In this document: piece after piece, positions 252 to 13,829 of the stretch
Layout of the letters: the number at the start of each line of letters is the position of its first letter
Numbering within the stretch: the first letter of the stretch is position 1
Source: Ministeria vibrans ATCC 50519
Lineage: Eukaryota; Protista; Filasterea
Direction of reading: 5' to 3'
Length of the DNA: 40,831 nt
NCBI GenBank assembly: GCA_943704425.1
Contig: CALSCP010001655.1
Span: 1 to 40,831 of the forward strand
Program-made: the position numbers and the translations under genes
The notes under the pieces: generated by a model
The model's database searches: none
What the model was told of the DNA's origin: nothing
What the model saw: only the letters and a program-made list of their open reading frames with translations

Positions 252-3200
252 CTACGCCAGTCCAAACTGAGCGGCTCCTACACAGCGAATCGCGGTGCGA
301 AGCTTTTTCTTGAACTCATCCTCAGACACATAATCGGGTAGAAAGAGACGGTTAAAGCACACTGCCGCGTGGGGAAGTTGGGAGGGACCACCCGACGAGA
401 GCACAATGCGCATGCAAGGGTCAATTGCCTTGAATCCGCCCACAGGTACTGTCGACTGTCCAGTGAAAAACAACAGAAGCATTTGAACGTCATCGTTGTC
501 AGACTCACGGATGAACCGCTCAAACCACTGTGAGAGAACAGAAAGAGATTGTTTGAGACACACACACAAACAGAGACGCAAAGACAGTTCAAAGACAGAG
601 GCAGAGATTGGGGGGCTAAGACAGAGGGAAAGGCATTACACGCTACTGGTGTGCACATGTGCACTGCCGAAGCCTCGTCGAACTTTACCTCTTTGGTCAT
701 GTTACTCACGCAAGGCCGATCATGCGAAATGCACAAAATGAAAGCTTCTCGATCAATTTCAGCATCGCCACTCACAACTCTCTGCAACATAGCAGGGGAG
801 AAGATAGAGAGCAGGTCGCGCGAGCCGATCATGTCTGTGTGTGTGTGTGTGTGTGTGTGTGTGTGTGTGTGTGTGTGTGTGTGTGTGTGTGTGTGTGTGT
901 GTGTGAGAGAGAGAGAGAGAGAGAGAGAGAGAGAGAGAGAGAGAGAGAGAGTCAGAGGGAGAAGAGGGAGAAGGAAACAATTAACAAAGTGATAGAGAAA
1001 GAGAGAAGGATGAAAAACAGAGAGAGAAAGTAAGAAGAAAGTATTAACAAACTAGCTGATAACATAATAATTATTTCTTTCTCTTTTTGAGGGACCAACC
1101 TTCAACGCCTTGGATCATCGACTCAATTGGAAGGCCATCGCCGAGACGGAAACGAACGCAGTCACAGAGGTAGTTGAGGCAGGTAGTTGCGTTTGTGATG
1201 GAGACGGGGTCGCCGTTGGGACAGGCCTTCAAGACGTGGTCGTAGGTCGAGGTGAGGGGCACGGAGAAGGTCAAGCCCATAGACTTGGCCTGTTCGTCGT
1301 CAAGCAGACACAGTTGGTGGAAGCTGCGTACCATAGCGTGGTCCATCTCGGCAAGGTCGTCAATGTTCACACGGTAGCCAAGCAGCACACGGAAGAAGGG
1401 TGTCGCAAACGCACCAGGAAGCTTCACCTTCTTGAGCAGCGCCAGACCAATGAGTCGCCCAATGGCACGGTGCATCTGCTTGCACCTCACCGACGCCATT
1501 CCATCCATCCACGCATGGTCTCCGCCGAGAAACCCACCGGTCTCCATGGCGCGCAAGTAACTGCACTTGCCCGCCCGGATGTCCAGTGCTGTCTGCTCCA
1601 GGCAGCCCTTGGTGACGCCAAGCACATCGATGGCCTCGTCGCCCTTGAGACGGATCACAAGTGGACGGTGCAAATTTTTCAGCTCCAAACTCTGGAGTTT
1701 CACCAGCAGCGTGTCGGCAACGGCGTCAGGCGAGACACTGATGACCTCCATTGAATCACTGGTCGGCTTGTCGTCCCTGTTTGGATAGCGCGTGTCCAAC
1801 ACACTGTCAAACAGTTCCAGACGCTCTTTCAAGCCCAGTGACTCGCTGATCGCCTGACCATACACCTCCTCCAGCGAGCGGTGGTGCGTTGGAATGGCTC
1901 CAACGACAAAGCGGGTGAGACGTCGCAGCGATTGAATACGAATCGCCTCGGGCGGGATGGCAATGGGCGCTGGTCGGCGTGCGGCGGCAGCGGCGGCGGC
2001 GGCGGCAGTGGTGGTGGTGGTGGTGGTCACAGGCGTCGCATTGCCCGCAAGCGTAGCGGCAACTGTGTGCTCGACAACTTGACGGCGCCGCTCCTTCTCG
2101 TAGAGCTCTTGAAGGCGTTCGGCAGGGCGTGACTGTGCGCCCAAACTTGCAAACAGGCGAGTCCCCAGAATGCTCGACAGCACAGCGTCCACGACGGGTG
2201 CGCGAAAACCACTCTTGGTCATGGCGTGGCGACGCTCAGCCTCCAGACTCTCCAGCAATTCCAGAGCGCGCCGCAAGAAAGCATCTTCGTCTTGAACTCG
2301 CGCAGATAACTGGGTCGCAAGTACATCAATAAGAAAGGCAGCGAGTGGATCGCGACTCGTGTTCGCCAACTCCAGCCCGGCCAACTGATTCTCCTGTTTG
2401 GCAACAGTCGTTTCGTCTGCTGCCTGCACATGATGGACCACAGCAATGGCAAGCGCGCGAGGTCTTCCCTGTCGAATCAGTTCGTTCAGGACGCTGACTG
2501 ATACGACGGTGAGACCTGGTCGCTGTGTGCCTTCACTACCTTCGCCCTGTGCCACAGGCTGCTGGCCGTCCATTTCGGCTGCCTGGGTCTCCGGGACGGA
2601 AGCAGACAGTGCCTGCTGCACGTGTGCGACCACCTCGGTGGCGAGCACTCCCGTGCTTACACAGCCCTGGACACATGCCTTCATCTTCGTGCTCTGGCCA
2701 GCAAATTGCGTCTCCAGCTCGTTGCGCACGCTTCTGGGCAGCAGCGCCAAAGCAAGCGCCAGCTGCGGCTCCCCGCGAGCAACCAGCGGCGACACGGCCT
2801 CCCACAGCACCTGACGCACGCGACTCACATCTGCATCCCCTGTGACGGTCGTAAATACAATGACGTCGGGTGCAACCGCAAGCTTTTCGGCATAGTTGGC
2901 GCGCACCGCCGCCTCGTCCTCCTCCAACGCCTGTTGAATGGTGTCCGATTTGTTGATAAGCACAATAAACTCGCGGCCCAGCGCGCGCACGAGGTCGACC
3001 ACCTTGCGCTCCGGGTTGGCAACATGGCCCGCCGTAAACACACAGACGACAAAGGTAGACACGATGCCAAGATGATGGCACACCTGGGCGACGTAGGAAC
3101 GCTCGTCGCTTGCGCCGGGCATGTCGACAACCGACATGGAAAAGTGTGGGTTGCTTTCCTTGTGAATGGGGTACAGATGAGCAAATTCGGTGCGTCGAAG

Positions 3201-13400: not shown

Positions 13401-13829
13401 TTCCCACGCAAGACGGCTCCGCGAGCGAGTATCAGGGCGCTACCTGGCTCTGGCAGTGTCTGGAAAATTTCTGTGCTTTTGACAAAGCCCTATTCCTTGT
13501 GCTTCTGACTGGCACCTGTGCAATCGGGCCCACCACGTCTTCATATCATGTCATTTGGGATTCATGGCACGCCAGCGACGAGCCGGTGACAGGTATGCAC
13601 TGATCAATATAATTATCTTATATGTGTGATCATGAGAGAGATGAGAGGAAGGGTGACATGAGCGGGGGGAGTGTGACTGACTGCATCTCGCATAAACACA
13701 GATGGCCACCATGCGTCAGATGCGATAATTCGTGCAAACCTACCCACTTGCACTCTTCACATTCCTATGTTCCCTTCATACGACCAACTCGAGGCTGCTC
13801 TGCACTCAGCGTTGGAACAAGACCGTTAA
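7404..13829 (+). CDS. Paralogue B: same lipase_3-like / TIG-like / hairpin / GTPase architecture with a degenerate HECT-like C-terminus (~1,970 aa, 5 exons)
   Basis: Exons 7404-7496, 7649-11941 (GC donor AAG|GCAAGT), 12132-12215, 12266-13592 and 13702-13829, all frame-consistent. Motifs: LIFCGHSFSG (8597-8614), ITFSSP; GVHNAGKS (10697-10720), DFPG, NKSD; HECT-like YRMIGRVVGL, FLEGF, LLSFFTAPQLQVLACD, WLWQCLENF, LLTG. Last exon reads ...IIRANLPTCTLHIPMFPSYDQLEAALHSALEQDR*. Confidence 0.82.

Follow-up and report, generated by a model that had tools for sequence, protein, structure and literature searches.

Divergent lipase-like, GTPase and HECT fusion genes in Ministeria vibrans and a protist family of predicted ubiquitin ligases with recurrent degenerate partners

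What do the two giant, divergently transcribed genes near one end of contig CALSCP010001655.1 of the filasterean Ministeria vibrans ATCC 50519 encode, and do their products work together? The contig (C1655 of assembly GCA_943704425.1, which comprises 29.7 Mb in 2860 contigs) was analysed over its positions 1 to 40,831, a stretch that we refer to as the window. An initial annotation had described the genes, here called A and B, as a head-to-head pair for lipase–TIG–hairpin–GTPase–HECT proteins and had proposed that these form a membrane-attack and ubiquitination system of cell-autonomous immunity. The observation is confirmed and its interpretation partly supported, lipid hydrolysis and immunity being among the parts that found no support. 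The reading that we favour, with moderate confidence in its two parts taken jointly, is that A, B and a third, unlinked copy C arose as paralogues within this lineage and belong to one conserved, uncharacterised protist family, and that A and B would act as a hairpin-anchored, GTP-gated HECT ligase, a heteromer of an active and a pseudo-ligase subunit.

Gene A (252–6846, minus strand) was modelled from canonical GT..AG sites and frame continuity, in the sequence alone, as exons 6846–6072, 5725–1100, 834–689 and 527–252, which code for 1940 amino acids (aa). Gene B (7404–13829, plus strand; 1974 aa) consists of exons 7404–7496, 7649–11941, 12132–12215, 12266–13592 and 13702–13829. Between the start codons (6846 and 7404) lie 557 bp, and the stop codons are at 252 and 13829, in agreement with the initial description of two divergent genes of ~1,950 aa. 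The intergenic region between the start codons (6847–7403, assigned to neither strand) is presumed to be a bidirectional promoter, and a repeat search in these 557 bp yielded short weak repeats only. Three of the four B introns (11942–12131, with GC–AG borders, 12216–12265 and 13593–13701) are spliced out in contigs of the RNA-like runs X1–X3 and retained in unspliced form in the DNA run X5, and the first (between 7496 and 7649) was called from genomic DNA only. In each of X2 and X3, a spliced contig of 5125 nt extends from 8415 to 13852 and thereby joins the lipase nucleophile (~8585), the hairpin, the GTPase and the HECT domain, ending 23 nt beyond the stop codon; that of X1 has 3989 nt. The sole break in the coverage of B (8364–8414) is a poly-Ser codon repeat that breaks DNA contigs too. 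The second B intron (11942–12131) is CT-rich and of low complexity, and the raw open reading frame (ORF) reads through it as a false hydrophobic tail; the next, a 50-nt GT–AG mini-intron (12216–12265), adjoins an 84-nt exon and is removed in the RNA-like contigs. At position 11931, ten bases before an exon end, the assembly has a G and all the runs, which cover the site differently and include DNA run X5, read C, a mismatch that is likely an assembly or strain difference. All searches, folds and trees used single exons or intronless loci.

An N gap inside gene A, together with the way in which the exons of A were called, could suggest that the giant frames are artefacts, with separate lipase, GTPase and HECT genes mis-joined as neighbours or the assembly faulty at the gap. 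For B, such an artefact is refuted by the 5125-nt spliced contigs, which run from the lipase nucleophile to past the stop codon. It is equally refuted for C (L008:1757–8218, on contig C1405 of the same genome), an intronless, uninterrupted frame of 2153 codons with the same architecture as A and B. Moreover, full-length homologues occur in independent transcriptomes and genomes, and complete choanoflagellate transcriptome ORFs of 1533–1791 aa carry the same domain order. The gap in A (5879–5888) is itself intronic, being part of a (TAA)n microsatellite in intron 1 (5726–6071, minus strand). The GT donor and AG acceptor of this intron both lie outside the repeat and its phase-1 junction preserves the frame, so that the gap should alter only the length of the intron. 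The flanks of the gap are also colinear with C, of which residues 132–217 correspond to A exon 1 and residues 326–487 to A exon 2. Given the spliced B contigs, the single-frame C and the complete choanoflagellate ORFs, the lipase-like, GTPase and HECT parts belong to one gene product, as had been claimed; the possibility of separate genes for these parts falls away, and an artefact is highly improbable.

A and B share one domain order. It begins with a small beta domain at the N-terminus and continues with a class-3 lipase-like domain resembling EDS1/PAD4, a sandwich of Ig-like type, a helical stretch that includes the two hydrophobic helices, a small GTPase, a helical linker and the HECT domain. 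BLASTP aligned A with B at 25% identity over 628 aa of hairpin and GTPase (E value 2e-35), and identity was ~30% in the N-terminus and HECT domain and 37% in the lipase core; the eight motif pairs quoted in the initial annotation for this common order are all present in the translations. In Pfam, C, which is unlinked to A and B and has no family neighbour, matched HECT over the complete domain (E value 4e-60, 204.4 bits), Lipase_3 (22.8 bits) and MMR_HSR1. A, B and C fell into one clade in trees (support 94–96), with B on a long branch, and A and B as sisters were not rejected by the approximately unbiased (AU) test (p-AU 0.69). An early tree that grouped B with P0010 and P0016 proved unstable, and later trees unite A, B and C.

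The family extends well beyond M. vibrans. An exhaustive profile search with the hairpin and GTPase alignment recovered 98 proteins, 33 of them at an E value of 1e-30 or better and mostly 950–2030 aa long. MMR_HSR1 was matched by all 19 long members scanned and HECT by 18 of them. Named sources cover four supergroups and include the choanoflagellates Codosiga hollandica, Salpingoeca kvevrii and S. infusionum (two copies), Balamuthia mandrillaris (KAL6055612.1), a Paraphysomonas transcriptome and Leptophrys vorax; other members come from metagenomes. KAL6055612.1 and other members are annotated as hypothetical proteins. The statement in the initial annotation that no characterised protein joins these domains still stands: none with a lipase-like, GTPase and HECT architecture was found in the literature searched, and a 2013 survey of HECT proteins mentions neither lipase nor MMR_HSR1 (PMC3673628).

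The HECT domains of the three paralogues differ in a way that bears directly on whether A and B could be partners. That of A (252–1883, minus strand, exons 2–4) has its catalytic Cys in the context LPHAAVCFNRLFLPDY and, like that of C, combines an LPxxxxCF context (AVCF in A) with a tail bearing Phe at −4 (A ends in QFGLA). The HECT domain of B (12746–13829, plus strand) is degenerate: a Cys is present, but in a loop (LPTCTLHIPMFPSY) that is ~3 residues shorter and is out of register in the alignment, and the FGxx tail at the C-terminus, with its −4 Phe, is missing. Pfam HECT (PF00632, cutoff 23.9) scored 56.6 bits for the exon 2 part of A (E value 4e-15), the match being partial because of exon boundaries, 71.9 bits for B (9e-20) and 204.4 bits for C. 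Like HECT E3 ligases, all three have their HECT domain, composed of N- and C-lobes, at the C-terminus. The best matches of the family profile outside the family were HUWE1/UPL1-like proteins (class VI; Grau-Bove et al. 2013). C carries a UBA-like stretch (LVSMGFPPSLVVAVLQSMQ) between GTPase and HECT, and a UBA-like stretch before HECT is a feature shared with HUWE1. None of the surveyed HECT families, however, has a lipase-like domain, membrane hairpin or GTPase (PMC3673628), and a further difference from HECT ligases is that here one paralogue of each genomic pair carries a degenerate HECT domain.

Is this combination of an intact and a degenerate ligase peculiar to M. vibrans? Among eleven family loci whose flanks we examined, adjacent paralogues form a pair in three organisms besides M. 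vibrans, head-to-head in two cases, and each pair combines one intact with one degenerate HECT domain. In metagenome contig L016, P0004, with an intact HECT Cys, stands head-to-head at a distance of 128 bp with a 42%-identical partner in which Cys is replaced by Ala. At L025/L028, on a 1-Mb contig of a metagenomic eukaryote, the intact P0023 is head-to-head with a partner that has Met for Cys and has lost the tail, and at L013/L014 the intact P0010 lies tail-to-tail, 112 bp apart, with P0016, where Cys is replaced by Tyr. The 6.3-kb stretch that separates the L025/L028 family genes holds a copia-like (RVT_2) ORF of 1596 aa (L025:4623–9413). S. infusionum has one copy with an intact HECT domain and one with the Cys loop deleted. 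The degenerate copies retain the GTPase motifs and full length. When all of them were forced into one clade, the tree was rejected (p-AU 6e-55), and the degenerate copies therefore have several independent origins; a conserved, ancient head-to-head pair was ruled out, since pair members group by lineage. By these alignments and trees, the combination of an intact with a degenerate copy has arisen on four or more occasions, often with the two side by side, and A/B fits that pattern. This recurrence is the main new evidence for A and B working together. Judged by the sequences of its members, the family is a predicted HECT ligase with an unprecedented module set and a recurrent pseudo-ligase partner.

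The same survey suggests another explanation, in which the pairing is incidental: A and B would stem from a local inverted duplication and act as independent homomers or monomers, B would be decaying or neofunctionalised, and the recurrence would reflect a tendency to tandem duplication in an expanding HECT repertoire. Several points favour it and weigh against a partnership. Seven of the eleven loci are single-copy (L011 from Balamuthia, L012, L015, L018, L026, L027 and paralogue C), so that pairing is not obligatory, and the idea of a co-functioning pair in the initial annotation gains support from the adjacent pairs elsewhere but not from most loci. Domain preservation is best in the unlinked C, the branch of B is long, and the two members of a pair usually group most closely with each other, as local duplicates would; the pairs could be the outcome of frequent local duplication and decay of one copy. 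The group for the AU test was defined with a first tree already in view, and long branches carry several of its rows; B, given its Cys near the catalytic position, may be enzymatically active. Nonetheless, exactly one HECT domain degenerates in all four pairs while GTPase motifs, hairpin and full length are kept, and this one-sided decay points to purifying selection on the non-catalytic partner. In addition, the P0005-type pseudo-copy is older than the split between two organisms, and B is transcribed and correctly spliced. We rate incidental pairing as rather unlikely, though it has to be taken seriously, and retain a heteromer of A and B as the preferred reading. In being divergent and diverged paralogues, one of which is without the catalytic or executor feature, A and B resemble the head-to-head nucleotide-binding leucine-rich repeat receptor pairs RGA4/RGA5 and RRS1/RPS4 and partnerships of enzyme and pseudoenzyme. 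The receptor pairs are unrelated proteins, however, and the analogy is limited to genome organisation.

If the HECT domain is what varies, the GTPase is the most conserved part of the family. It lies at 2775–3293 (minus strand) in A, with motifs GVHNAGKS, RTE, DMPG, AGHVANPE and NKSD, and at 10673–11266 (plus strand) in B, with GVHNAGKS, RTE, DFPG, AGHVGKPE and NKSD; across the family GVHNAGKS, RTE, DFPGxxDER, AGH[IV]AxPE and N[KQ]xD are near-invariant. Pfam MMR_HSR1 matched A (E value 1e-5) and B (4e-6), with C also above threshold. In a model of residues 400–1010 of A exon 2 (mean predicted local distance difference test, pLDDT, 83), the G domain is compact and of the Era/EngB/YsxC type, and its top structure matches were EngB (2cxx_B; Z 17.6, root-mean-square deviation, rmsd, 1.9 over 149 residues), YsxC (Z 17.2) and Era (Z 17.2). 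The likeness to Era/EngB (YihA, YsxC) TRAFAC GTPases thus lies in a compact G domain of ~170 aa with motifs G1–G4, and one metagenome source labels a family member ‘EngB’. The family GTPase differs from these in having no KH or ribosome-binding parts, in being fused between hairpin and HECT, and in its own invariant motif AGH[IV]AxPE. The initial annotation had instead likened it to the IRG/GBP/GIMAP/dynamin-like membrane GTPases, an analogy that is not supported. These too are P-loop GTPases able to sit on membranes, and GIMAP2 was among the Foldseek matches, but IRGa6 (Z 15.4 against the A G domain) ranked below the Era/EngB types, Dynamin_N remained below the Pfam threshold in A, B and C (17–21 bits against a cutoff of 27), and the family domain has no large-GTPase insertion, middle domain or GTPase effector domain. 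Two further observations concern this domain. In the HECT-intact P0010 (L013:137–5914) and in P0026, G4 reads NTTP, with no Asp, and the pseudo-HECT neighbour of P0010, P0016, has NVHD; this difference may be reciprocal degeneration within the pair or an alignment artefact. Elsewhere in the M. vibrans assembly (G000:C498:44083–44682), a 622-aa open frame contains a weak match to the family GTPase profile (E value 5e-6) that is probably an unrelated small GTPase.

What, then, is the lipase-like domain doing in a ligase? In B it extends over 7928–9211 (plus strand), with GHSFSG at ~8585 and a disordered insert at 8333–8569. In A it is split by intron 1 into an N-terminal half (~6184–6459) and a C-terminal half (~5151–5660), both on the minus strand, the latter containing the nucleophile elbow LIFCGASLSG with its Ser kept (5601–5630, minus strand). 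An AlphaFold model of residues 1–678 of B exon 2 (pLDDT 72, cores 85–97) showed a class-3 lipase fold at residues 88–515, with the disordered insert at 223–301. When this model was searched against 48,161 chains, the top four were EDS1 (Z 22.1 and 21.5) and PAD4 (19.3 and 19.2), with fungal lipases next at 16.7 or less. In a separate comparison EDS1 reached Z 23.0, and its match has an rmsd of 3.4 Å over ~282 residues. Fungal lipases and feruloyl esterase overall gave Z 15–17 with ~245 residues aligned, and part of the lead of EDS1 stems from its longer aligned length (~280 versus 245 residues), a caution to be set against the EDS1-type role that we propose below. Run against every PDB sequence, a family profile of 12 sequences likewise had EDS1 (E value 2.8e-11), rice PAD4 (4.5e-9) and Arabidopsis PAD4 (2.7e-4) as its only significant matches, and no true lipase scored below E 0.4. 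The profile alignment takes in the nucleophile elbow (S123 of EDS1), the Asp and a long helical insertion, up to a PxGxF strand; part of the insertion covered is what we take to be the dimerisation helix alpha-H of EDS1. A single-sequence PDB search with the lipase region of C returned EDS1 alone, at a non-significant E value of 0.38. In Pfam, Lipase_3 (PF01764, cutoff 22) was matched at 22.8 bits by C and at 15.4 bits by B (E value 0.018) and not by A, where an intron splits the domain; 8 of the 19 members scanned reached an E value of 0.01 or better. The likeness to EDS1/PAD4 that had been suggested is therefore stronger than claimed.

This likeness has limits. The domain shares with EDS1, PAD4 and SAG101 the best match by both fold and sequence profile and a catalytic Ser that is dispensable or lost in many members. 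A third possible parallel is with heterodimers of diverged paralogues, since EDS1 functions as a heterodimer with its paralogue PAD4 or SAG101 (PMC9153377). On the other hand, a C-terminal EP domain of the EDS1 type was found in neither A nor B (the alignments go no further than EDS1 residue 331, and Pfam gave no match), and the A/B family are therefore not members of the EDS1 family. Furthermore, in A and B the lipase-like domain precedes an Ig-like sandwich and is embedded in a 2000-aa ligase, identity to EDS1-family domains is only 12–14%, and the A/B-type family occurs in protists whereas the EDS1 family has been reported from seed plants only (PMC9153377). Judging from these comparisons, the likeness may reflect either a specific sister relationship or a common long-insert subtype of class-3 lipases.

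The catalytic residues bear on the role proposed in the initial annotation, a cell-autonomous immune machine that docks on a pathogen or phagosome membrane, hydrolyses lipid under GTP control and ubiquitinates a target. In A, B and C the GxSxxG Ser and a following Asp are aligned, with candidates only for the His, and this retention would fit such a machine, as would the immune function of the nearest structural relatives of the domain and the phagotrophic habit of the named sources. Against it, the Ser is kept in only about one third of family members and is absent, often together with the Asp, from the other two thirds, in which GTPase and HECT stay conserved. Because most members have lost the nucleophile, lipid hydrolysis cannot be the common function of the family, and the claim to that effect is doubtful; it may nevertheless take place in members that keep the Ser, A, B and C among them. 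The GTPase, moreover, is Era/EngB-like and not an immune large GTPase, and EDS1 signalling is not known to need its catalytic triad. We therefore consider an immune machine of this kind quite improbable, and turn back to the hairpin-anchored heteromer and to the parts that would hold it at a membrane.

The N-terminal beta domain matched nothing significant when a 12-sequence profile was run against the PDB (best E value 0.013, an unrelated homeobox protein). The Ig-like (IPT/TIG-type) beta-sandwich of B, with HTLFGSS, maps to 9257–9586 (plus strand; residues 531–640), and by homology to it that of A, which ends in RTIFGDS, to approximately 4497–4859 (minus strand); F and G of the sandwich-terminal FG motif are invariant in the family. 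Structure matches of the B sandwich were to an amylase domain, the IPT domains of MET, plexin and Sec5, and NFAT RHD-C at Z 5.6–7.0, below the caution level of ~8, and neither A nor B matched Pfam TIG. The hydrophobic hairpin lies at 3897–4124 (minus strand) in A and at the aligned positions 9971–10162 (plus strand) in B. Two hydrophobic segments rich in Gly, Ala and Pro are present in all three paralogues, with Kyte–Doolittle 19-residue means of 1.7–2.24 (2.24 and 1.92 in A), and the A hairpin was modelled as helices 138–177 and 185–242. An ESM Atlas search with the helical and hairpin part gave chance-level scores only (0.86 or less). Of the TIG domain plus hairpin described initially, the models thus agree with an Ig-like fold and a hydrophobic hairpin, but the TIG assignment is left with sandwich scores below the caution level and no Pfam match. 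We infer a hairpin topology with both flanks on the same side of the membrane from the need of GTPase and HECT to be cytosolic.

The window as a whole has GC-rich exons, AT-rich introns and numerous microsatellites; long repeats of the types (GT)n, (CA)n/(CT)n and (TAA)n at 1–250, 840–1000 and 5770–6000 occupy the downstream flank of A and two of its introns. Beyond the pair, an intronless 667-aa ORF at 14590–16593 has no Pfam match at an E value of 0.001 or better, and two ordinary neighbours unrelated to the A/B pair match Nucleotid_trans (30675–32900; PF03407, E value 9.5e-12) and UVSSA_N (36019–37473; PF20867, 5.6e-9).

How might such a protein pair operate? In the scheme that we propose, and that we hold to be somewhat on the probable side, the two hydrophobic helices would insert as a hairpin, leaving both the lipase-like end and the GTPase–HECT end facing the cytosol at a membrane, since GTPase and HECT need cytosolic partners. 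The GTPase, as the invariant core of the family, would gate the ligase as a switch that dimerises according to the bound nucleotide; related TRAFAC GTPases are activated by dimerisation. By analogy with EDS1–PAD4, the lipase-like domain would serve mainly as a binding or dimerisation module and not as an obligatory hydrolase. A, with its canonical HECT domain, would provide catalysis, and B, with its degenerate HECT domain and intact GTPase, would be a regulatory or scaffold partner, the two genes being co-regulated from their common 557-bp region. A bolder extension, which we consider unlikely, is that this is an ancient eukaryotic machine, a membrane-anchored and GTP-switched E3 forming an active/pseudo-ligase heterodimer through its EDS1-type domains, that the heterodimer principle of EDS1/PAD4 derives from or co-originated with this protist module, and that its role is in cell-autonomous defence or phagosome surveillance.

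As a rule, HECT ligases find their targets through protein-binding domains. The fusion of such a ligase with a lipase-like module, a predicted membrane anchor and a nucleotide switch suggests a new kind of control over ubiquitination where it takes place at membranes. Outside seed plants, our searches found no closer relative of the EDS1/PAD4 domain than this lipase-like domain, and the EDS1 family is reported to be missing from non-seed plants (PMC9153377), which makes the origin of a plant immune node testable. The family is also present in Balamuthia mandrillaris, a pathogenic amoeba, and in choanoflagellates, for which genetic tools exist. Finally, the repeated and independent loss of the HECT active site, often beside an intact copy, amounts to a natural experiment that points to a partnership of enzyme and pseudoenzyme.

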